A DNA stretch of 64,000 bases from Orbicella franksi (Eukaryota). Every line of letters begins with the position of its first letter. Position 1 is the stretch's first letter. Where the stretch lies: assembly GCA_964199315.1 (NCBI GenBank), contig OZ116700.1, positions 23,994,001-24,058,000 on the forward strand. Direction: 5' to 3'. The translations under genes and the position numbers were made by a program. Positions 10,549 through 55,000 of this stretch are shown one piece after another. A model generated the notes under the pieces. That model saw only the letters and a list, made by a program, of their open reading frames with translations. It did no database searches and had not been told where the DNA came from.

Positions 10549-13500
10549 TCATGTTTCTGCGATCTTGATGTCACACGGGAGCACGTTCCAACCAAGACTT
10601 GCATCAGCTTGGAGATTAATTTTTCTGCTCTTGAAGTAAATTCTTCTTACACAGCCGGTAAAACCAGTATCAAACTTTCTGTAAGTCATTTCCACAATGT
10701 TGTCGCCTCCTCCTGTTGATAAACAGTCAAAAAAAATAATAATAATAATTACTTTTCTTTAATGATTTTAAAAAGGAAAAAAACAGCAGGAACAAAAAGC
10801 AGCAAAAGGAAACGTGTGCAGAATGAAAGTGACCCTTTTTGCAAATGATCGCTAAGAAACCCTTAACCTTGAATTGAGTACTCTCTTAATGTGCGTAGTT
10901 TCTACAAGAAAAAAACTTTTACTTAAGGTAAACAAACATAAAACTTTGTTGTTCTTTTCGGGATGGCTTTTAAAAGAGAAGGCGTCGTGCTGTACAAGGT
11001 CACTGTTCGACATGGCAACCCAGAGCGAGTTCCAATTCTAATGGCCGAGACAAATTGAGGTCGTGAAGAAACACAAGTATCGTAAGTTAAGTTGCACTTT
11101 TAAGTGCCGCTTTCCCGTATTCACCTATAAGTATGGGTCCCTTCACGTTCAATCCGAGGCTTCCGTCAGCTGATGTGCCGTTAACAGGCTCTGTATCATC
11201 CACCTTGAGAGAACCTTCTTTGAAACTCCTGACAATGGAATAAAGAGATAGAGAGACAAACGTGTTTTGTTTTGTTTTTTTGTTTTTGTTTTTGTTTTTT
11301 TCCTGGAAAAACTATCCTGCAGCACGATTCAAGTTTTCATTTTTGTCCAGATTGAGGGAAAGAAGGTTCACCCAAAAAAACACATAGAGCAAAATGATAA
11401 AAGGTGATACCTACAATAAACTTCGACAGTGAAAATAGTTAATACGAGATATATGTTTTCCTTTTCTCGTTCGAGTATTTATTTGAGGCGTTCCGTCACG
11501 ATATGAGGAACATAACTAACAGATTCGCCATTCTTTGTTCTTTTAATTCAGATGTGCAGTTCCTTACCTGAACACTTCAACAGTATGCCACTGACCGTCG
11601 TTGACTGGTAACGAGGAGAGGAGAACAGCGGGACCCGAGCCCAGCTCAAATCTACGAAGCGAAATAAAACATCAGCGCCTTTCGGAACAAAAAGCAGCAA
11701 GCATTGAATGTAAAGTTTTTCTATGTTACCTGAAGAGACACATATTGCGCGCGCCAAATAAAAAAGAATATAAAAGATCGACAACCTGGCATCTATCAAA
11801 ACTGACCTGAACTCCAAGAATCCCTCTCTTAAACCGATTGCGAAGTAGTCTCTTCTCTACAAAGAAAGTAGAAATCTGAGCTGGTTAACGTCTTAAAGAC
11901 AGTGATTAACGTTTATCGCGTCTTTGTACATTGCCTCTCAGTCAAGCTCGATATAATAACATCAAGGTAAAAAACGATATCGTAACGTCCAAGGTCTTTC
12001 AAGGTTCGCACTGACCGCATTTCACCATTTCTAGGAATCAGTTTTCTCATATCCCGAAAGACTCTAACTGGGCAGCAATGCAACTTTTCATAACGCGATT
12101 CCAAAAACCCTCTATTTTCAAACATAAAGTGTTTTAAAATACCACAGCGAAAACAAAATCGCTAACCTGGCCTTGCCATAAAATTACTCCATTTGGTGCG
12201 TCGGTTTTTATTTCGAGTGACATATAATCTGGCTTTACTACCCTGAAAACACACAAAATACATATATCAAAGATCTAAAGCGTTCAATTTCCTGATCTGT
12301 TCGACAAAGTAAAGGTTTCTAAATGATTTGGAGAACATTACACGAGGTTGATCAGTTGATTAATGAAAAAACGTTCAGAGTAAGCCACTCTAAACACGCA
12401 ATGAATTTGAACCGTAATTGGGAAGGTCGAGTTAGCGTTTTGTGGTCATACCTTGGCCCTCGCATCAGAGTTCCTGGGAACTGTAAGTAACCATCTCCAC
12501 TGAAGGAAGCGCTGTTGCCAAGTTGAACAACTACGACGAAAAAGATATAGTAAGTTAGCAGTAAGTGGGCTTGTCACCTTGTCGTGGTGGTAGAGCTTGC
12601 GTGTCTCAGTGACCCCAAGAGCTATGGCGGTGGGGACTTAGTCCCTGGTGGGTTCAACCGTGCCGGATTGGTCGAGGGATAGAGCCCTGACATAGGACAG
12701 CCCCTGGTCCTCCAGGTTAGGGGTTGGGCGTTAGGCTAATCACCTAACCTTGTACAAAAATGAATGATTACAGAAACCTTCCAGGCCCTATGTGCCAACT
12801 TGGCGCCAGGGGACAGGTGAAGGTGAAGTTAGCACAGGAAACAATCTTGGAAATAGCTGGAAACAATAGTTGCGAGCATAGAACAAGAATAATTCAGATT
12901 GTTCAAACGTTAGATTATTTAAAAAAAGATTTACCTTAATTACCAATCAAACTAAGAGATAAATACATGGAAAACTGTAAGCACGACCACTTCGGTGCTC
13001 AGATTTACTTTCCTCAACCTAGATCAGCATTGCAGTATTACCATTCTTATCTTACGGAGATTAATCTCTACCAAACTCTAGAATAAACGACATCTTCGTT
13101 TTTTTTTTCTTAAGGGACAAAAGAAACTGCAAAACGCCATATTATTGAGACACCTGCCTTGAGCAGAATCAAGGTGTGATCTGCATAGGCGATTTATTCA
13201 ACCAGCTACATAAGAAGACCCTCCCAACCCCACCCCCACCCCACGAAATAATGCGACGAAATGTAATATGAATGCCCGACGAAAGAATACCTTAGAACAA
13301 GCCTAACCTAGCTGTTTCGTTCTACTAGGAACTCGATATCACTCCGTAAAGCATAGTCGATAATGGGAGAAAGTTGTTATTTCTCCCACCTTAGTGATCC
13401 AACACATCTGGTGCACCTTGATGTATCTCTGAATACAAACGCACCAGTAGTCTTAGACTACTGTACAAGAATACTTACAACTCTCACAACGCTCTCCTCC

Positions 13501-16500
13501 ATATCCTAACCGGCACGCACATATCCTATCAGAGCTAGGGAAAGCTATTCCACTATTCAGACAAGTCTTGTTCTTTTCCGGTCCGACCATAGTGAACTCG
13601 CAATGTCGTCCTGTGTACCCTTGTGCGCAAGAACAAACATAAGCGGTTTTCCCTATCGGTATGCAAGTGGCATTGTTTAGACACGGTTTTATTTCACAAG
13701 GTAACAGGCATTCTGTACACTGTTTGATGTCACGCAATTTGAGGTTAGACATGATCAAGTTAATCTCTCTGTCGTCTACAGACACGGCAGATATACAGCC
13801 GACCAGTCCAGTGTCAACGCCAACTTTGCGAGTATCTATCGCTGTGAAGTTTTCCACGCCGCCTATGAACAAGTCTAAAGCGAGGTTCAATCCTTTTAAG
13901 CAGCACGGCGAGTAGTCTGAGACAGGTGGATCGCTATCGAATGTAAGCGAGCTCCAGTCAAGAACACGTTCCACTAAAACAGTGTGCCACATTCCTACGG
14001 TGATGTTTCTGGAGCTTCGCACAATACCAGGGCCGCTCCCTAGATTAAACATAAACACCACTTTACCGCCAATAATAGCTAGCGAGATAAAGTCTCCTCG
14101 TCTAGGGTAACTTCGCTGACCATTGTACAGCAGGAGCATGTTGCCTGACCTTTGAACCATAAATCTAACGGCGAGTTTTAATTGTTGAACAGCGCCTTCG
14201 ATACCGGGGAATGACATGAAGGAATTACCCTCGAACATGGGCCTGTCTATGAGAGTTCCTAAAGAAAGGGAGGAAAGAAATCGTAATGAATAACAAAGCT
14301 AAACGTTTGACAAGCAATGCATCGAACAAACAAAAATTATTGATATTTTCATCGCGATAAAAACCGAGAAGGGAGGAAAAGATTAAACCTCTTTCAAAAA
14401 TTATTCAGAAGAGAGAGAATTGGTTCGGGACTTGTGTGTTTACGCTATTACACTATTGTGATGCTGCGTGAATTTAAGTAACTGTAGCAATCTCTATTTT
14501 AGTAGAAAACTTCTAGAGCTCCTTTTTAGTTACAACACACCTTCTTCACACCTTTCTCCAGAATAGCCTGCAGGGCATATACATTTAAAACCGTCTTCAC
14601 CAACATTCTCGCAACGCCCTTCATTGCAAACTCCCGGAGAACATCGCTGACCAGCACCTTGACAAGTTCTTCCCGAGTAGCCAGGCCTGCAAATACAGAC
14701 AAAGCCCCAGGCTCCACTGACTTCCCTGCAGGAACCACCGTTCTTACAAGGCCTAGTTGCACAAACGTCACAATCTTCCAGGCCCACTCGGTTAACGGGA
14801 TCACCTATGTAAGGTAAAAATAATGCGGGTACAATATCTACAAAGTCAGTGATGGAATTAAGCTTTTTTAGATGTACCGACATGACTTGATAAAGCCGGG
14901 TTCAAAGATATACCTTGAAAACCCAGCACAAAGGCTGTACCGAGAGAATCTGATCGGGTAGAGGTCTTGACAGTGCGGACAGAGCGCAGCGAGTTTGTAC
15001 TAAAAGACCAAGGACCGATATCCTCCCAGTTCGGCCCAGCGTACGGCTTAGTAAATAAGATATTTATAACACGACTGAAACTATTTACCAGAAATGCCAC
15101 GATCACGGGCTGGGAAGGCACCGTAAGGTTCCAATACCCAATTCTAATAGAAAAGCCGACTAAGCGCATAGATACAACAGACGTTTTAAAACAAAAAGAA
15201 GGGCACGACAATTGGAGCGAAAAAAATTAAAAAAGCCATAAAACTACCAGAAAATTATCAAGCATCTTTTAGAACAGCACTTAGTCAAATATTTAGAAAG
15301 TACTTGACTGCTAATGATCGATTTTTTGTTATTGGCGTTCTGAACTGTTGACGCGTGTCTGTTCAGTAACAGATCACAGAACATTAGCGACACACCCGGC
15401 TATCGCCCCGTGTGTCATTTTTGTTGTTGTTCTTACCACATTTTGAAGTCATCCGTGATCAAATTCTGAAGAGACTCACGGCAACATGGAAAATGTTATC
15501 CATTAAACAGAAAGACGACCACTCGATCTGCGTACGCACTTGGTAATACGCTTCTCAAGAAATAATGATCACACGACGTTTGAATGAGAATTAAGTACAG
15601 TTAAATAGGGGTTTGAAATAGAAAACAATACGAAAAACTTACCCAGCTCAGCCACTTTGCCATCAATAACCAAGTAGCTCAAACAGCCAACGAACCCTGA
15701 TTCGAAACCTGACGAAGAACTTATGGAAGAAAAGTCAGGGACTCCCCCCACGAACAAATTTTGGTTCAAGTTCAGCCCAGTACTACCCCCCTTAGAAGTT
15801 CCTGTCACAGGTGGCTTGCTATCAACGGTCAGATTTCCCACTTTTTCGTCACGAGATAGAATAACAGTGTGCCACTCGAACCGACGCAGTGGCTGCTGGC
15901 TTCTGATGATTGCAGGCTCGAAGCCGAGGTTAAATCTGTAATTTAACGAAACATCCGTAGTAAATTGTTTATCTAGATTGTTGCAAGATATTGAAACACA
16001 AGGTTAACTCTATGACTTGATTATATAACGAGATTAAGCTCAATAGCATTTAATGAATTTGTGATACAGTGCCAAGATCCTAAGCCTGGAAGCGTTATCA
16101 CAGTGAATTTCTCGGTGGCCTTGTCGACGTAAGCCTCTTACGCACACGTTCTTTTGGCTTGCTGCGCGACGAGCCAAAAGATTGTCAGGGCATGAGGCTA
16201 CATCGAGTTTAAAAGCTGAAATGTTTGGAGAGTCCACGAAAGGTTTTCGCTCGTTTGACGGGCAGATGACGTCAACGTCCGCTCACTTATTCAACTGTTC
16301 TAACTGCAAATTGATGAAAGTCGATGAGAGTTGTCCTAGGCTCGTCTTTTCAACTGTTGTGTACTCTTGTACCAATTCGATTACGCATTCACGGGTCTCT
16401 CGGTAATCGCTTTAATTCTAAGTTGTTTTGATCTCTTTTACAAACTTAAAAGTAGCCGACAATAACAAATTACTAGTCAGATAAAATACTACCACAACGA

Positions 16501-43000: not shown

Positions 43001-46000
43001 AAAAATACAATATTATTATAAGATAACCAATGTAAAATAATTGTGACGACAGAAAACATTAACCTAACGCAACGCGTGAAAACTTGTTCAGTTTCCACTC
43101 TTTCTTTATCGGTTATTTCAAAACCTCATTCCTCGGCAGTTTTAGAAAACTGCCGAGGAATGAGGTTTCTGTCTTTAATATTGAAACATTGTGTGTGCTT
43201 ACCAACCTGGAAAGTTTTGTTGAAAGTCAAATGGAACAGTACGTACTTTTCCGAAAAATCCGTTCGGAATTTGTGGACTTCTTTCACAGGTGCTCCTCAT
43301 TTTTCCGTTGAGAGTGGAAAGTAGGGAATTTCCATCTGCCATCATCAGGAAACAAATAACCGAAAACCTTTACCACTGTTCTACTGCCACTCCAACTCGC
43401 TCCTTCTGTATTTCTTAATGTTGTATTGCATTTCTTCACATGCTGAACATATTAAAGCACTAATGAAGCTCAAAACTTACAGCTCACAGTTTCGTCCGGC
43501 GTATCCTTCAGGGCACGCATCACATGTTGGAAGACCGTCATCCTCAAGAAAACACGTTGGGCTAAATCTTGAAAAAAAAAAAAAAAAAAAAAAAAAACCG
43601 CAGGACCTTATAAACAATAGACACAGTGTCTTCGTTCCATGTAACTGACAACTGTACGGTAGTTCACAAATTGTGAACTAGCATTGCATCGTAGTAAAAC
43701 AGAGTAGAAACTGCAGACAAAATAAAGTTAAAACTGTTTTAAGATACGTCAATAACCGTAATTCTAAATAAAACGCATAATAAGTGAAATGTTCTAGTTG
43801 TCATTTTTCTTTGGCACTTGACTACGACTTAATGTACTGCCAGACTGAGTTCTGTTATAATACACAATTCGCCATATTTGCCAAGTAACACGTTAAGGAC
43901 ACCACAATTAGATAATAACACTCGTATACAGACATACTGATTTGGCGGTATGGTCAGCGGACATGGACACGGTTGGCAGTCAGTTGGGGTACCCTCCAAG
44001 GCGTTTCCAAAGTAACCTGATTGACACCTGTCACAATGTAAACCCTCGGTGTTGTGATGGCAGTCCTAATTAAAATGAAAAATCTAGTCATTACAGAAAG
44101 TCTATATCCTTAAGAAAACTGCAAATTTTAATCATTGCGAAATCACGCGGTTTGTGTTTCATTCAGAAGCATCCGATACCTAATAAAGAGTTGGAAGACT
44201 TTCCATTTAAACAACCACTCCCTCTTAAAATCTGTAAATTGCTATAAGGAAAATATAGCAGAACATGCATAAAAGCCCAGTTTTAAAGAATATCGGAACT
44301 GTCAAGTGAATCTCGGTTATGCACGGAATTCTTCGGCGGACCATCAATCCTAGTTCTGATGAGTTAGTTGTATTCTTGAAAAAGCGAGAGCAGTGAAAAG
44401 AACTACTTTAAACACTGCTTTTAGTTGTGCTTTTAATAATATAAGAACAGAGAAACCTAAGCAACTCACGAGACAAGTGCCGTTCTCCTGGTCACAAATG
44501 TTGGAATGTTCATTGCACGAGCACTTTATACAATCAGGTCCATCACTTGACCGAGTGTAGCCTGGGGAACAGTACTAACGAAAACAAAATATTGAGTAAA
44601 GAGAGAGCAATAAAGGGATTTGAAATAATATCAAAAAAGAAAAGCGAATTGACTTAATTCTGTCCCATTTTTAAGTCACCCAATTTAATGAGCTCAAATT
44701 TTTATAACAATCAACAAGTCTTGAAAGACTAGAGGAAAAAAGTGTAGAAGATGTCAAAGTTTTACAGCTAAATGATGTTTGTTACCCTGCCTAATGGAAT
44801 GAAGACGAACGAACACATGATGCAGTAAAAGAGAGGCGACTAAAGGTTATGTTTTTCTTTTAATGGTTTGGTGGTCACCAACTGGAACTTTTCGTGGTAA
44901 ATAAGAATTTCGTTTTCAGAGCTTTTCTCATGAAGTTTGGAAGGGACCCTTACGAACAGATGGTAACGTTCTGGGAGCGAAGTTGGTCAAGTGAGAGTAC
45001 ATCGGAGTAGAACAAAATAATGCGCTTCATAAACCTGGGCCATCAACTTGTAACATCCATTGCTTACATCTTCAAGCTCTGCCATGATTCCTCATGACTA
45101 GAATGCTTGTTGAAGAGCAGCACAAATGTCCACAGCTGTATAATTGATGACAAACTTATGACTGACCTACGATGAACCCACAAGACCCCTTGATGTTATT
45201 GTGGCATTCGAATCTTTCATTCTCAACCACGATTAGCAAAAAATAAGTAATTTTTTCGACTAGATGAGTTGTATTAAAGTCCCACTCAATTTTTTGAAGT
45301 AGGACACATCGCGGTTTCAACTTAGAAACGAAAGGATGGATTACCTCACAAGATAGTCCACTATAGCCCACAGGGCATTCACACTGTTCCACTAACAAGG
45401 CCTTTCCAAAGCCTATGTTGTGTGGGGATGCCACGTCAAGGGAAATGTCTTTAATGCTGTAAAAAAAGTAAATCCCTAGTCAGCTAGGAGGAGGGTTTCA
45501 ATTTTTTATTTAGATATGAAAAGTTCTTCATGTACCTTAATGAAGTGGCACTGGGTCCATCACCATGCGAGGCCCTTACATAGATGGCCTGGACGTCCGA
45601 TAACACACTCATGAAAGTGTCCCTGGAAGCTGGCTCTCCGTTAGATGAACGCCATTTTGCCTGAATAACAAGAAGAGGGAGCGAACTGGGAAAAATGAGC
45701 GGTTTTTAATATGACACATTTTGTTGAGACGGCACTATAAACAGCACCTATCATGTACTGTACGGCATACCTCTGTGAGAGAGACCTCCATTGATGTTTG
45801 ATAACCCTTAGTACTTGGCGGTTCTTCACGATAAAATACCAAGGTCCCCTGTTTTCCCTGACAAACATACATTGATTCATAAGTGACTACAGGATATCAA
45901 CGCCTGGCACCACTGGAGTAATTCCTTTTCATTTGCTGGATATGTTCACTGTTAAGCTAGGAACATTTTCTAATGAAATTCACAACTATGTTTTTGATCT

Positions 46001-49000
46001 GGCTCGGCTTTTGCCACGGCCTAAAGGAGCAATGTCATGGACGACACCTTGCAAAATTCAATCTAAAATTTGTTCTTTTGTAATCCAACATATTCTTTTC
46101 CAGTGTTACCCATTCTAATTCATGTTCCTTTTTGCTTAACAGATGCCCAAGATGAATCTCTACTTTCGTAAATTATTATTTTAAAGATAGATGATGTCTT
46201 TGGTATCAGTTTAAAGAATTCTTGTAAAAGGACGAGCCTGTCTCCTTGACGATGCAATTGCAACTGAAAGCAAGAGAAAATTGTCTCATACAAGTATCTC
46301 TTCTAACTCTTTCATGCACTGATTCCTGTGACCGTGGTTGAATCTCTTCTTGAAATACTTCATATTTTATGGAGGAAATGTTACCACCATTTTGGACAGC
46401 GATCATTGTAGCGCGCGACTAATGATATTCTAAACAGCTTGCAAACCAAGGTTTAGTACCAAATGTTCAATAAAGACGCGCTGAAACAACTTTAGCTGTT
46501 TTCAGGCGTTCGGTTTGGAGACTCGGCTTCGCACTGCTCCCCAACCGTCTGAACGCCTCTCCAGAGTCTAAAAAAACGTGTAATGTAAGCCATTTCTACT
46601 AAAAAGAGAATCCATACCACCAATCGAACGGCTTCTATGACCTGACCAGGTGTGGGAGATGGCGTTGTTGTGGTTTGCGTAACAGCCGCAGTTGTTGTTG
46701 TTACATCTAAAAAAAGAGATGGCACAGTAAAGATGGTTAAACTGCCAGAGTTCTATTCTTGAGCTAGTCTATACATAAATGTAAAGTGCATATTAACTGC
46801 AACTCTTAGTGAGGAGGACGCTGTTTGCTGAACAAAAATTTACGACCGACATGACACCTTATTGCAGTTGCCTCTAAGAGGGATTATGTCCCTAAAGAAA
46901 CGTAATCACTATATTTGCTCTCATTCGACCTTGTAATAAGTTTATCCGAGCTCAACCAAATCTCTAAAATCTAATCATTTGACAGGAATGTTTCTAAAAT
47001 ACAAATACATCTTCACTTAGTAGATAGAACAGGACATAAAGATGTCACCCGCCTTGATCTCTAAAGATACATTTTTAAACAAACCTGGTGTAGTTGCTTC
47101 TGAAGTTACCGTTTTTCTCGACCTCGAAGACACACTGGTGGTTGCTGCAGAAGACGCATATGTCACTGTTGTCATTGTTTCAGAAAGAGGCTTTTCAGTG
47201 CTGTAAGATGGAAAAGGCTCTGTAGTAGTTACATCATGATCACCATCGGTCGATGTATCCGTTGTTGTGTACAACGTAGCTGATTTTGTTGTTACTGCTC
47301 CTGAAGCAGGCTTGTCAGTGCTGTAGGCTGAAGGAGGCTCTGTAGCGGTTATATCATCTTGATCATCGGTCGATGTATCCTTTGTTGTGTACAACGTAGC
47401 TGATTTTGTTGTTACTACTCCTGAAGCGGGCTTGTTAGTGCTGTAGGCTGACGGAAGCTCTGAAGTAGTTGTTTCATCATCACCATCGGTCGATGTATCC
47501 TTTGTTGTGTACAACGTAGCTGATTTTGTTGTTACTGCTCCTAAAGCAGGCTCGTCAGTGCTGTAGGCTGACGGAGGTTCTGTAGTAGTTGTTTCATCAT
47601 CACCATCGGTCGATGTATCCTTTGTTGTGTATAACGTAGCTGATTTTGTTGTTACTGCTCCTAAAGCAGGCTTGTCAGTGCTGTAGGCTGACGGAGGCTC
47701 TGTAGTAGTTATTTCATCATCACCATCGGTCGATGTATACTTTGTGGTGTACAACGTAGCTGATTTTGTTGTTACTGCTCCTAAAGCAGGCTTGTCAGTG
47801 CTGTAGGCTGACGGAGGCTCTGTAGTAGTTATTTCATCATCACCATCGGTCGATGAATCCTTTGTTGTGTACAACGCATCTGATTTTGTTGTTACTGCTC
47901 CTAAAGCAGGCTTGTCAGTGCTGTAGGCTGAAGGAGGCTCTGTAGCGGTTATATCATCTTGATCATTGGTCGATGTATCCTTTGTTGTGTATAACGCTTC
48001 TGATTTTGTTGTTACTGCTCCTGAAGCAGGCTTGTCAGTGCTGTAGGCTGACGGAGGCTCTGTAGCGGTTATATCATCTTGATCATCGGTCGATGCGTCT
48101 GTTTTTGTGTGTGTGCTTGGTATTGTTGTCGCTGTTCTAGATAATGGTACGTAAGTACTGTAGGCTGAAGAGGGCTCAGCAGTGGTTGTTTCATCTTGTA
48201 CGTCAGTGAATGCATCTTTTGTTGTGTAAAACGTTCCTGGTATTGTTGTCCATGGTGGAAAAGTTGGTGTTTGTGTGCTGTACGCTAGCAGAGGCCCAGT
48301 AGTAGGTGTGTCATCTCGACCATCAGTCGACGAACTCACAGGAGAAGATGAGGCTGACACCGATGTCACTTTCTCCGAAGTAGCCCCTTCAGTACTGTAG
48401 GCTGAAGATGGCGCAAAGGTGGTTTTCTCGTCTTGATCATCGGTCGATGCTTCCGTTGTCGTGTGAAACGTTTCAGGTATTGCTGTCAATGTTTCCGAAG
48501 TAAGCTTTTCGCTGCTGTAGACTGAAGAATGATCAGCAGTGGTTGTTTCTTCTTGCCCGTCAGTGAATGCGTCCTTCGTTGTGCGAGGCATATCTGGTAT
48601 TGTTGTTCCTGTTGGAATAGTTGGCTTGTCCGTGCTGTAGACTGATCGAGACTCACTAGTTGACGTTTTATCTCGACCATCAGTTGAAGAACTCACAGGA
48701 AAAGATGTAGCTGGTACCGATGTCACTAACTCCGAAGTAGGCCTCTCAGTACTGTAAGCTGGAGATGGCGAAAACGTGGTCTTTTCATCTTCATCATTGG
48801 TTGATGCTTCCATCGTCGTGTGAAACGTATCTAGTATTGTTATCACCGTTTCCGATGTTAGCTTTTCACTACTGTAGACTGAAGGATACTCAGTAGGGGT
48901 TGTTTCAACTTGATTGTCAATGAATGCATCCGTTGTTGAATGCAATGTATCTGGTATTGTTGTCCTTGTTGGAAAGGTTGATGTTTCAGTGCGGTAGGCC

Positions 49001-52000
49001 GAAAGAAGCTCAGTAGTGGTTGTTTCATCTCGGCCAACGATGATCGATGTGTCTGTTGTTGTAAAAACTTTGTCTGGCACTGTTGTCTCCGTGTCCGAAG
49101 TAGGGAGGTCAGTGCTGAAGACTGAAGAGGGCACAAAAGTGGCTGCCGCATCTTCACCATCGGTCGATGTATCCGTTGTCGTGTAGTATGTGACCGGTAT
49201 TGTTGTTACTGCGTCTGAAGCAGTTCTATTAGTGGGTTGTGCTGAAGACGGCTGAGTAATCGTTGTTTCATCTTCACCATCGGTTGCTGAATCCGTTGTT
49301 GCGGGGAAAGTGTCTGGTATTGTTGATACTGGGTCAGAAGTAGGCTTGTCAGTGCCGTGGGCTGAAGAAGGCTCAGCAAAGGGCGTTTTATCCTGAGCAT
49401 TAGCCGCTGTACCTCTTGTAGTGTACAACAAATCTGGTATTGTTGTTACTGTTTCTGGAGGCCTTTCAGTAGTGTAAACTGAAGAAGGCGCGAAAGTGGT
49501 TGTGGCGTAGTGACCATCGGTATCGGTGGTCCCGTAATTCGTATCTGGTATTGTTGCTACTGCGTCTGAAATAGGCTTCTGAGTGCTGTAGGCAGAAGAG
49601 GGCTCAGAAGTGGTTGTTTCATCTTGACTATCCATTGATGCAACTGGTATTGTACTGTAGGCTGAGGTAGGCTGAAATGTGGTTGCCTCATCTTGGCCGT
49701 CAGTAAATGTATTCGGTGTTGGCTGAAACGTATCTGGCACCTGTACCGTTTTCAAAATAAGGGTGTCCGTAGTGTAGGCTATGTTTGTTTCATCTTGACC
49801 ATCAGTAGATTCATTCCATATAAAGGAAGATCTCTCAGGTATTGTTGAAATTGCTACCGATTCAGGGCTATCAGTACTGTAGGCTGAAGAAGACACAAAT
49901 CTGGCTTCTTCATCTTGACCGTCAGTGAATGCATCCGGCGCTGTAAAGGACGCATCTGGTATCGTTGATGTTGTCTCTGAAGTAGGCCCGTCAGTACTCG
50001 AGCCTGGAGATAGCAGGAAAGTTGTTGTATCACCCTTACCGTTGGTAAATGCATCCTTTGCTGTGGAAAACACAACTGGTATCGTTGTCGTTGCTGTCGC
50101 TGTCGTTGCAGCAGTTGTTAGGTGTTCTGGTTTGGCACTAGCTGTACTCGGAACTCTCCCAGTGTGTTTATCTTGATCAATAACTAGTTCGATGTCTTCG
50201 TCGGGGCTTGCAGTAGTCATACTACCGATCTTTCCAGTTGTAAAAATTGCTTTACCATCAATAGTCGGTTGCTGTGGTGTCCCCGGTTTTTTGCTAGTGG
50301 AGAACACAGTGTGAATTGGAGTTGTAGGGCTTTTGGTAGAATGTTTAAAGTTATTAACCTGGAATGCAGTTTGCTCAGACTCTACCTTAGATCTAAATAT
50401 TTCCTTGTTAACTTCTGTGGAAACAGATGCGGAACTGGCAGCCAGCTTTACAACACGACTATTTGTAGACGGCGTATTGGGAGCAGAAGTCACTTCGTCC
50501 GAATCGCCCAAGGACGGATCATCAATTCCAGATGCATCAATGTCACCTATCTCTTCGTCGCGGACATTGTCAATGTTATAATTAGCTACAAAACCCCTGC
50601 TGTTCAGTATTTCACGTAAACTTCTAAGGTATCTGGATGGATTCTTTACAGAACGATCCGTTATCCTGTTACCACCGTGGTACTTGACAGTGTAGCGGAG
50701 CTTTCCACCATAACTTGATAGCTTTGATAACAAAAAATAGCAAGCCATTTTGTCAATAGATATCACCTACAGTAGTTACGCAAGCCATAATGGCATTACA
50801 TTGACTGGCTCGAGGTAACATATCTAAATTATCCGATTTATAAAACTGCTGTTGGTCCCCCCAAAAATGACTTCTCCTGAAATGTGCGTTCGATTTGAAA
50901 CATTCATGTTGACATTTTACCTAAAAGTCATTACCTAAAACGTGTCAGGAAAGAAAACCTTAAAAGAGACACAACTGTATGACTATCCAAAATACCTTGA
51001 TTCTTTTTCTCAACACAAACTACAGCGCTGGTCTAAACAAACCATTGAAAATTTCAGCGAAAAATACTTTTCTGAAGCCACGGAGTGAAAAATGGAAATC
51101 AAATCTTTACCTTGTTTCCTAAAAGTTCCTTTGGCAGGGTCCAGTAATACTGGTTTCCTTTAGACATGTTATGTGCCACAAGCGCATTGTTCAAGTGGTC
51201 AGCCGTGTAGGTAATACCGGGCACATCAGATCCATTCACATCAACCAAATGCATAATGGGACGGGTGCTCTCATTTTTGAGTTGTATTTCAAGCTGCAAT
51301 AAGCGAGACAAAGAAAAGAAGTTGTGACACAAGAAATGAGGGAAGCAAACTGCTTTGAATAACTCATAGGTAAAACGTTTGAAGACACGCTGCCCCTGTT
51401 TCACAGGAATTCTTGTAGAGTGTTTATGGTTCCCTATTTTTCCTTGCGTTTGTCGAGATCGTACTCATATTTCAACGGCCGCCATCTTGACCATCTTCGT
51501 TCCAGACGGCGAGTGCAATATCCGTTGCGCGTAACTGAATTGGTCCTATCCCACGATTGCTCTAGTCATCGGAAACCAAGATGGTTGCTATTTGAAGTAT
51601 GCATCAGATCCCGACGTAAATGTGGGACTGTAAATAGTCTTTTTGTCTTTGAAGCTCTACAGTTGAGTGGCGTAGTATTTTTTTAAGTTAGGACGAACGA
51701 AGGGAAACTGAGATCTCGTTACGTGACGTTCACACTCGGCGGATTTATTAACTGTAATCCAAGCCGCCACTTCGACTTGACCAACCTTACTGGAACTGGC
51801 CATTTATAAAGGATAAAGAGAATGACTACGCACTTAAGGAACAATGTTATCTATCGTTTTGCCCTAACGTCTGACTCTGCGCGCCACAAAAGACAGTTTT
51901 CAGGTCTTTTATCTCTATGACCTTTGGTTATAACAAGCATAAGTCAAATTAAGTAGGACGTAATGACTATTAAGATGAAGAGCAAAGCGGGAATAAGGAC

Positions 52001-55000
52001 TGTCTAGACGAACGGGAGAAATCGGGTTAAAACAGAGTAAAAGGTTTCTTACCACGATTTCGATCAGAAGGGTTCAGATTGGAGTTGACAAATTGGATTT
52101 TACCTACCCTGTCTCGGTACAAGTTTGCACTGCTGCAATTTTGTGAGCGTCCCATACAGTAGCACGACACACAGCGTTCCTGAACTGCATAGGGTTGCTC
52201 GTCTGGGCTACAAAAGCCATCTGATGGTAATAAAAATTTTCTTTTAAATATGATTAGAGGAAGAAACCTATTACGCAAAGTTGCACTATGCTCAATTTTT
52301 ACCTAGGGGCCTTTCTTAGATCGAGGAGGTCAGCAGCCAACACACCGGTACTTAAGCAACGGTTTTTATCCTCTTTTTGGTAAGCAGGACATAATTTGAC
52401 GGTCTGTAAGGGTGCAATGTTTGCACCACAAAACATACATTTCAGCCGAACTTCGCTTTTCTTGTGGGCCATTTAACCGACCCATTCCTTCGTGAGAATT
52501 GTTTTAAGGAAACTGTTCAACTCAGCTACAGTGGAACCTCGTTAATACGGTAACCAGCGGGCCACAAAAATCTGGCCGTATTAACGGGGTGGCCGTATTT
52601 AAGGGTTCTTTAAATAAGAATATGACTGACTCAGCTTTTGCTCGGGCCAGAATAAAGTGGCCGTAATAACGAGGTCGCCGTATTAACGGGGTGGTCGTAA
52701 GGCGGTGTTCCACTGTATTCTATTCAACGGGTTTATTCCAGGTTCAGGAAGTCAGAAACTGGTATCAGTCTGTGCATGACGAATGAAACGAGTAGACACA
52801 AAAAGCCCGGAATAAAAGTAAAACACCTTGCAGTGGTACTGACTACTACATTCAGTGCCATCGCTTCTCCCTCTCTCTTTCACGTTTAGGTATTTCCCAT
52901 ATACAACCATGGTTAGAAGTGTTTGATTATGTTCAGGCCTGTAGGTCAGGATAAGAAGCACAGTTACCTGGTCTTATGGGAGCACATTGACTATCAATAT
53001 GACACATCTGGTGGAGTTTTTGAATAACAGTCTCTGAAAGGGCACAATAGTAAATGTAAAACTCGTCAATGTATCCTGAGAGTTTAAACTCCAACGCCTC
53101 GTTGATTGAGTATTTGCCAATAGTAGTAAACTCACTCCACGCTACCTCCAGACGTTCACCATTGGACTCGCCTTGCAATATTTCCTTTCCATTAATAAAC
53201 ACTGAGGCTCGGTTTCTGCGTGCGTCATATTGCGCCACAATATGTGTCCACATATGGGGTGCTACAACTGGGTTTGGGCTTAACAGTGCAAAAGTCGCTC
53301 GTGGCGGACTCGTTTCAAAGTATAACCACGTCACATGACCTTGAGCAATCTCAAATCGAAGTTCACCAGTTTGCCCTTTTATGAGAAGAATCGGTTGAAT
53401 GCCAGAGGTGGTTTGCAAGTTAACCCAAACGGAAATGGTGATTGCATCGGTTACCTTTGCATATTTTGCACTCTTAAATTGCACGACTTCAACGTTCACG
53501 TTTGCAAAGTTGCTGCACGGCGCGTCGGCAATGTCGGCTATACGGGACTGGGCACGGCGTACGTCATGTTTGTCGTGTACTAAGTCAGCGGTTGCATTGT
53601 CAAATCCAAGGTGCAATTCGGGCGTGCAACATCCTGTCAAAGTAGAGAAACTTCTATGAAAAGAAACTAATTGATGGATTAAGGAAAGGGAATACAAGTT
53701 AGATTTTCCACTCTTGCCGCTTTTTTGGACGGTAATTCGGGGTGGGCATACTTCACAAAGTTTTTGGTAGGGGTATGTCTTGGGTTTCGCCAGAAATTTC
53801 AAGTGATTTCAGTTCATAACTCGATAGGTTTACAAATAAGTTGCAAAACTTTACCCCCTTTGTTTTTTTGCCTGTGTTTGCTTGCTTGTCTCAAAGTTAC
53901 CTGTTGGAAAATACGTGTCTTTTTTGTAGACAGCACAGACAAAGTGTGTCATTTTCTGCTATCCATAGCTACAGCTGCATTAGTTTGATTCTTATGGAAC
54001 ATGCTCTGACCAATTTAACAATGACAACAATATAATCGGTTCAGACGTTTCGTTTACTTGCTACTTAACGTTTTCGTTCATTTCTATTCCCACTCTCCTG
54101 AATTTTCATACGATTTTTGTTTGGGGCGAACGAAAAGGGCAGGCCCGGGGGGTGACCTAACAGATCTGGACGAGGATGTTTCGTGCCAAATTTTTCCGCA
54201 GCATTGCTACACGTGTGCAAGAAAAGCTGACAAATTTGATTGTGCTTTTCCAAAGATACTCTCTAACTCGGCAACGGGGAATCGGGAAATCGGAAAACAT
54301 AGAAAGGGGAACGGAGAACGGGGAACGTGGAATCCCTAAAAAGGGGAATCTCTAAAAGGGGGAATCTTGAAAACGGGAATCTCTAAAAGGGGGAATCTTG
54401 AAAACGGGAATCTCTAAAAGGGGGAATTTCTAAAACGGGAAATCTCTAAAAGGGGGAATCTCTAAAAGGAGGAATCTCTAAAACGGGGAATCTCTAAAAG
54501 GGGGAATCTCTCCCTGAACAATAGCTAATGATGTTAATCTCCCGCTACGATTTGCCGCGTTGGTCGCAATGAGAACATGCTGAGGTTAACAATCCCTCAT
54601 CGCTTCGTAAATCTGTTCCGCATATAAAAGCGAGGGAAGGTCGCATCGTTATCACTCTTTAAGAATCGATCAAGTTTTAATTTAAGTTTCAAATGAGGTA
54701 TGATCTCACAGGACATTTTAAAGGAATATCAAAAGGCTTCTGGAGTTTCTGGAGTTTATCAATGTTGTGAAGTTAAAAGTGTAACATAACACATTTATAA
54801 CTCTCGAGATTAATCCTGTCAACATACAACACGCCACAAACCTGGTGGTCTATTGCTTGCCGGAGGATTCTCATCTCGGATAGCTGACTCATAATGAATA
54901 CCTCTGTCATAAATTCCTTTGCTTTCCTCGGGCGAATTCCGCTTGTCAACCGATAAGCTATCTGGGAACTAGATAAGGAAAAAATTGAGACATTTAAAAA

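Follow-up and report, generated by a model that had tools for sequence, protein, structure and literature searches.

A mucin-like tract that probably expands a loop of the first laminin-IV domain in a perlecan-like coral gene

What is a stop-free repeat tract of 3.6 kb doing in the middle of a compact domain of a basement-membrane protein? The question is raised by a 64,000-nucleotide (nt) stretch of DNA from Orbicella franksi (assembly GCA_964199315.1, contig OZ116700.1, positions 23,994,001 to 24,058,000; hereafter the window), which carries a perlecan-like gene on its minus strand. Perlecan is one of four core basement-membrane components, and we know of no settled function for its domain III. 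In the coral gene, the first laminin-IV domain of the corresponding region (L4-1) is interrupted by a tract rich in Thr, Ser, Asp and Pro. Our analysis indicates that the tract is very probably a coding part of this gene, since its frame is continuous with L4 sequence at both ends, matches to the Laminin_B profile PF00052 flank it, its site is conserved in other corals and its indels keep the frame. That it is a protein-coding, in-frame expansion of the L4-1 hairpin loop is the explanation we favour and consider probable.

A stop-free frame of 1,249 amino acids (aa) runs on the minus strand from 50766 to 47017 in the open reading frame (ORF) reading of the window, and splice signals divide L4-1 as listed here (a slash marks an exon border; L016 is one of the related coral contigs described below).

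51111..51293, minus strand: first exon of L4-1, 61 aa, phase 0 to 0 (acceptor ttattgcag/CTT, donor AAG/gtaaag)
47085..50721, minus strand: giant exon, an L4 strand followed by the mucin-like tract; 3,637 nt, or 1,212 codons plus 1 base, with no stop
50673..50721, minus strand: conserved L4 beta-strand at the start of the giant exon (PF00052 match; SYGGKLR invariant in four orthologues)
49888..50672, minus strand: non-repetitive tract head of ~262-280 aa, of mixed charge, with RxxR motifs and an acidic Ser-Gly motif
47086..49887, minus strand: ~23 copies of a ~40-aa repeat (from the repeat register and tandem-repeat arrays)
46707..47084, minus strand: phase-1 intron near the 3' end of the tract, 378 nt, gtttgt...tttttttag (splice signals)
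46618..46706, minus strand: small exon, end of the tract and closing L4 strand (...QVIEAVRLV); 89 nt, 29 codons after a split codon
45771..45857, minus strand: L4-1 exon, from the splice reading; its L016 orthologue is GKDATLVFHHELRSNSDNSQVTMEVPVTE
45536..45660, minus strand: L4-1 exon (splice sites read; PF00052 match)
45345..45456, minus strand: end of L4-1 and re-entry into the host laminin-EGF (LE) module, 86% identical to the L016 exon

As read from the sequence, the giant exon starts at 50721 in phase 0 (acceptor ttatcaaag/CTA) and ends at 47085 in phase 1 (donor CCAG/gtttgt); an alternative phase-1 donor, GCGG/gtgaca, 36 nt downstream of 47085, is also possible. The small exon is entered at 46706 (acceptor tttttttag/AT) and left after 46618 (donor GTG/gtatgg) with phase 0 restored, and is equivalent to the ...PVSRITDTVLMV that closes the giant exon of L016. 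Giant exon, split codon and small exon together give the interrupted segment a length of 1,242 aa. The coding frame of the 3.6-kb exon holds no stops, against 48-110 in each of the other five frames. In cassettes 2 and 3 of the same gene, the equivalent segment is a single 93-nt exon (41202-41110 and 31486-31394, respectively) in phase 0 at both ends. An earlier sequence-only reading had described just this contrast, with a stop-free tract in cassette 1 that resumes at 46618-46706 and one short exon in each of the other two cassettes; splice sites, exon phases and the open frame agree with it.

The same reading had placed the insert within a laminin-IV module, and profile matches on both sides of the tract identify the host as such. 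A six-frame search of the assembly with PF00052 matches profile positions 8-31 at 50665-50736 (19.6 bits, below the cut-off on its own) and positions 74-116 at 45535-45663 (35 bits, E 4e-6), with equivalent 74-116 matches in cassettes 2 and 3. Unlike this genome-wide profile search, a Pfam scan of the individual L4-1 exons gave no matches. L4-1 is itself nested in a laminin-EGF module: an LE half-module follows it, and a Cys-rich LE-like exon lies upstream at ~52030-52302.

The tract recurs at the corresponding position in five further coral contigs (L022, L023, L001, L002 and L016), recovered by an exhaustive HMMER search and a pattern scan, and together with the window these represent at least three deep coral lineages. 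L022 is 98.3% identical at the nucleotide level, without indels, and its frame stays open until the contig stops, over 462 codons; L023 (~89% identity) remains open for 848 codons despite repeat-unit indels; and L001 is 85.5% identical to the window. L002 and L016 are deeply diverged Tara scaffolds. Along L002 we find a LamG_3 exon, an LDLa exon, an LE exon and an L4 exon orthologous to 51111..51293 that ends ...FWALPKEFLGNK, followed by an acceptor, an SYGG-type L4 strand and the tract, which has ~1,300 stop-free T/S-rich codons with one scaffold gap and a phase-1 donor at its end as in the window. L016 is the most telling about placement. Its giant exon begins ITSYGGKLRFTVK..., continues through ~870 mucin-like codons with one scaffold gap, across which frame continuity is uncheckable, and ends ...PVSRITDTVLMV/gtttgt; the closing strand, ...ITDTVLMV/gt, is then spliced to GKDATLVFHHE..., ahead of the other L4 and LE exons. 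A single L016 exon thus carries the SYGG strand, tract sequence and the closing strand, in support of an in-frame insert into the ancestral 93-nt exon. A comparison with other cnidarian sequences had been suggested earlier; in the coral contigs compared here, the tract is found in the same place.

Sequence change among the close relatives respects the frame. The window and L001 differ by six exon indels, each divisible by three (9, 3, 6, 12, 3 and 3 nt), against indels of 8, 1 and 1 nt in the adjacent intron. The ratio of non-synonymous to synonymous change (dN/dS) is 0.55-0.64 in frame and 0.73-1.03 in shifted frames for comparisons with L023, with L001 and of L023 against L001; the window and L022 are too close for theirs to be informative. 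Between the window and L023 or L001, the tract gains or loses 43-47 codons at a time, in frame and close to the size of one repeat unit, so repeat number varies between species. An assembly artefact was considered and rejected, as L022, an independent contig, matches the window at 98.3% identity with no indels, and genomic runs contain 0.8-0.9 of the sequence words. The phase-1 intron 46707-47084 is common to the window and L002 (L002:12185, donor CAAG/gttgtg) and absent from L016 (L016:3049), a difference that is an intron gain or loss within the mucin-coding repeat.

The encoded tract contains 22.6% T, 13.0% S, 9.3% D and 7.6% P and no Cys (S+T 35.6%, S+T+P 43%), and these features with its tandem repeats define a mucin-like, proline/threonine/serine-rich (PTS) region. 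It is also acidic, as the sequence-only reading had said, with D+E at 15% against K+R at 6.5% and a net charge of about -103. The repeat unit follows the pattern SAYSTDKP....VTTIPDT.YTTTD.STDG.DETTT.EP., and the same repeat type is present in L002 and L016. Tandem Repeats Finder (TRF) reports an array at 47184-48095 (120 nt x 7.6 copies, 92% identity, no indels), which holds the youngest copies, and another at 48156-48980 (357 nt x 2.3 copies). The tract is single-copy within the 497-Mb assembly, and an identity as a repeat element or satellite was rejected on that ground.

Where in the L4 fold would such a tract sit? As a stand-in for L4-1 we modelled L003, an L4 encoded by one exon elsewhere in the genome, which matches Laminin_B at E 1.7e-26 and human perlecan region 3 (9i5a/9i5b) by sequence at E 6.5e-5. 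The L003 model, built from a shallow alignment, has a mean predicted local distance difference test score (pLDDT) of 64.6 and finds 9i5a/9i5b as its best matches in the Protein Data Bank (PDB) with probability 1.0, with a template-modelling (TM) score of only ~0.43; a single-sequence AlphaFold model of the L4 reached a pLDDT of 42. In the L003 model, a hairpin of ~10 residues connects the SYGG strand (residues 42-55) with the counterpart of the AVRLVG strand (66-70), and the HMMER alignment to human perlecan has an indel at the same hairpin. On this approximate mapping, the tract appears to take the place of the beta-hairpin loop that links the SYGG strand of L4-1 to the strand after it. If the tract replaces a hairpin, its two ends must meet, and it would form a closed loop. 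The large projection from the L4-1 surface proposed earlier accordingly keeps its place, at what the model suggests is a variable hairpin loop, and loses its shape as a linear stalk.

Several observations weigh against the coding reading. Over 45500-51450, two Logan contig sets from 'metatranscriptomic' runs showed no splice joints; the tract has a depth of ~6.5 in them, and the flanking introns are also covered, unspliced. The share of a 4.6-kb control intron (33200-37800) present is 0.39 in run X1 and 0.39 in run X2, against 0.49 and 0.41 for the tract. On transcript coverage across 47085-50721, which had been put forward as a check, these runs are uninformative: no joints were seen, and the control intron is represented about as well as the tract. 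Beyond RNA, the long-form donor GTTTGT is no strong match to the donor consensus; L001 has an in-frame TAG (871-873) where the window (~50041-50043) has AAG, followed by 350 further open codons, a difference that may reflect misassembly, allelic variation or a recent nonsense mutation; and the dN/dS values suggest that purifying selection on tract residues is weak, as would be expected for a disordered, glycosylated region. The retention in several corals of an internal donor, described below, points the same way.

Introns in the same 'RNA' libraries indicate genomic DNA or pre-mRNA, and their coverage is no proof of expression. In the runs labelled metatranscriptomic RNA X1, X2, X8, X10 and X13, an intron of the gene is as complete as an exon, which makes them unsuitable as expression evidence for the Orbicella franksi genome. 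The sole hint of expression comes from three cDNA runs (one study) and two poly-A runs that contain 0.22-0.34 of the tract stretch and are not among the runs listed for the intron (0.19 or more). Two raw poly-A runs gave 0 reads over 45500-51450, a result that carries no weight as a test. Contigs from RNA libraries show one 6-nt indel and no stop-creating single-nucleotide polymorphism in the tract. Protein homology searches, in which models of up to 2,100 aa were reachable, returned only genomic ORF calls or paralogue L4s, and neither these nor an exhaustive search of representative sequences gave a spliced transcript-derived product or full-length annotated model. One database protein, P0002 (133 aa), is 55% identical to the tract head with systematic changes of S/T/P/A/R to F/I/L/V/C, which suggests an ORF called on bisulfite-converted reads. 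Three other hits were rejected as low-complexity matches: P0004 is an unrelated bacterial STAND/WD40 protein, P0006 an unrelated C-type lectin that includes a Ser/Thr region, and the gene context of P0007 is likewise unrelated.

The most serious alternative is that the tract is an optional cassette, with an internal donor joined to 46706 to give a short form of L4-1, and tissues choosing between a mucin-bearing and a plain form.

50671..50672, minus strand: GT of an internal phase-1 donor, GGTG/gtaaca, exon end 50673 (sequence reading)

The short form would measure 46 aa and leave L4-1 a loop of ~25 residues. Both this donor and that at 47085 are in phase 1 and keep the frame either way, GTAACA is nearer the donor consensus than GTTTGT, and the GT is conserved in position in four of the six sequences (the window, L022, L023 and L002). 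It is lost in L001, where GCT is found (AGTGCTAACA), and the segment is deleted in L016, whose tract lacks the 3' intron, so that skipping there would require an exitron. The GT also falls within Gly-Asn codons, and selection for those residues may be enough to explain its retention; joints of either kind were not seen. We regard use of this donor to any meaningful extent as rather unlikely; it is compatible with a coding tract and does not exclude one.

Two further explanations are both very improbable. An open, tandem-repeat-rich intron, with L4-1 assembled from a 49-nt and an 89-nt exon, would account for the lack of spliced RNA that includes the tract, for the one in-frame stop in L001 and for a frame extended cheaply by a stop-free repeat unit. 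That economy does not reach the non-repetitive head (~262-280 aa) or the many diverged repeats, which are stop-free too. Nor does an intron explain a frame that is open, bar the one TAG, in six sequences from at least three deep lineages, in-frame indels confined to the tract, or dN/dS values under those of the shifted-frame controls, and L016 and L001 lack the donor that it requires. The tract could instead be an alternative terminal exon or a nested gene, giving a truncated secreted protein (LamG_3, LE, half an L4, mucin) by read-through to the stop at 47017: the frame does run 22 codons beyond the 47085 donor to that stop, and the downstream joint was not seen. Half an L4 sandwich would not fold, however, and L016 has the closing L4 strand after the tract in the same exon and frame. 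In the window, T-rich sequence carries on in frame into exon 46706-46618. No conserved start codon or signal peptide precedes the tract, which argues against a stand-alone gene.

Under the favoured reading of a coding loop expansion, the product would be the core of a basement-membrane proteoglycan with a closed, disordered loop of ~1,200 residues, both ends anchored in L4-1. The loop would be rich in Thr, Ser and Pro and strongly acidic, with a net charge of about -100. By analogy with known mucins the tract is probably O-glycosylated, and its ~40-aa repeats would be densely so, as in mucin PTS domains generally. Such glycosylation would stiffen the repeats into a hydrated, polyanionic bottle-brush near the N-terminus, with dimensions of the order of 10^2 nm. 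The insert would have been present before at least three deep coral lineages diverged, and the repeat units gained or lost since then would all have kept the frame.

The non-repetitive head carries two kinds of motif. Acidic residues adjoining Ser-Gly form the general consensus for glycosaminoglycan (GAG) attachment, and one such site is conserved in the tract head.

50518..50544, minus strand: acidic Ser-Gly motif DIDASGIDD, candidate GAG site (alignment A2)

In alignment A2 the motif D-[AG]-S-G-[IT]-[DE]-[DE] occurs in the window, L001, L002 and L016, with I61, D62, S64 and G65 invariant, and DASGIDD may thus be a glycosaminoglycan attachment site. A GAG chain on this motif may stand in for the SEA/SGD domain I, which was not found in the gene; loop and GAG together would make the N-terminal region of the coral protein hydrated and polyanionic, as domain I does for vertebrate perlecan. 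RxxR motifs lie near the start of the loop, at 50605-50640 (tract residues ~28-39), in every lineage: RYLR/RSLR in the window, RQVR in L002 and RVVR in L016. By motif they fit a minimal proprotein-convertase site; cleavage there, if it occurs, would leave two chains held by the L4 sandwich.

Is the host truly a perlecan? The gene is perlecan-like, a label based on architecture. Three L4/laminin-EGF cassettes (~45.3-51.3 kb, 39.9-41.7 kb and 30.4-32.2 kb), with a laminin EGF match upstream of cassette 2, reproduce the layout of domain III. They are followed, as in HSPG2, by ~13 Ig-like exons at 26591-17240 in a domain IV layout (two were scanned, matching Ig_3/I-set at E 2e-15 and 4e-14) and by Laminin_G at 15572-16003 and 13456-14298, with EGF, in a domain V layout; the SYGG and C-terminal L4 blocks match PF00052. 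Unlike perlecan, the coral gene has a Laminin_G_3 domain as its N-terminal exon (E 7e-18). No SEA module was seen in the window, where no SEA profile search was made, and tblastn with the L002 LDLa exon found no LDLa exon in the window. The perlecan identity assigned from the letters alone is thus upheld by the cassettes, the Ig run and the LamG-EGF-LamG end, and falls short at the N-terminus. In L002 the LamG_3 exon and the first LE exon flank an LDL-receptor class A exon (L002:7073-7219, Pfam E 2.5e-12), and none is found in the window, including 51500-53000; the lineage of the window therefore appears to have lost LDLa or never to have acquired it. Two adjacent copies of a translated repeat, probably a short interspersed element, lie at 52529-52723 on the minus strand, in the intron that follows the LamG_3 exon.

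A search of the full-text literature gave no description of a mucin tract in the perlecan of any animal, which accords with the earlier statement that none was known in domain III of bilaterians; the tract may already sit unnoticed in automatically annotated coral models. The loop after the ELRFTV strand measures ~15 residues in human perlecan and ~10 in coral cassettes 2 and 3, against ~1,220 in coral L4-1. Agrin, with its Ser/Thr-rich regions, and alpha-dystroglycan, with its mucin domain, resemble the coral product in being basement-membrane proteins with a repetitive, Cys-free spacer that is rich in Thr, Ser and Pro and presumably O-glycosylated. As far as is known, their mucin regions are linear linkers between domains, whereas the coral tract starts and ends in neighbouring strands of one compact domain, and must therefore form a closed loop. 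The coral tract is also more acidic than is usual for such regions (D+E 15%), and Tyr positions are conserved in every repeat. Vertebrate perlecan domain I, with its SEA module and three acidic SGD heparan-sulfate sites, resembles the tract in being an N-terminal polyanionic region, glycan-bearing by prediction in the coral; the two are non-homologous, and the coral tract lies within an L4 loop and has one conserved, candidate SG instead of three. In Nematostella perlecan, domain I is reported to be absent, as are O-glycosylation sites upstream of domain II (PMC4398486), and the nearest published remark on a comparable insert is a predicted mucin-like insertion in a Nematostella collagen XVIII-like protein (ColXVIII-like; PMC12549020).

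A more far-reaching idea, which we offer tentatively and think less likely to be right than wrong, is that stony corals rebuilt the GAG and hydration function of domain I as a ~1,200-residue, O-glycosylated, acidic L4-1 loop with a conserved GAG site, in which species-variable repeats would tune cation binding and the hydration of basement membrane or mesoglea. The layout would then be a mucin inside a jelly-roll domain that itself sits inside an EGF-like domain, and RxxR at the loop base might allow a convertase to cut it into two L4-held chains. A Ca2+-binding or skeletal role for the loop is speculation.

For those who annotate coral genomes, the in-frame internal donor is a warning, since it would allow a gene predictor to call the tract an intron. 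If the tract is what we take it to be, it would show how far a compact extracellular domain tolerates a nested disordered insert and would offer a candidate location for the glycans of coral perlecan, and its species-variable repeat array could alter the physical properties of coral basement membrane and mesoglea.

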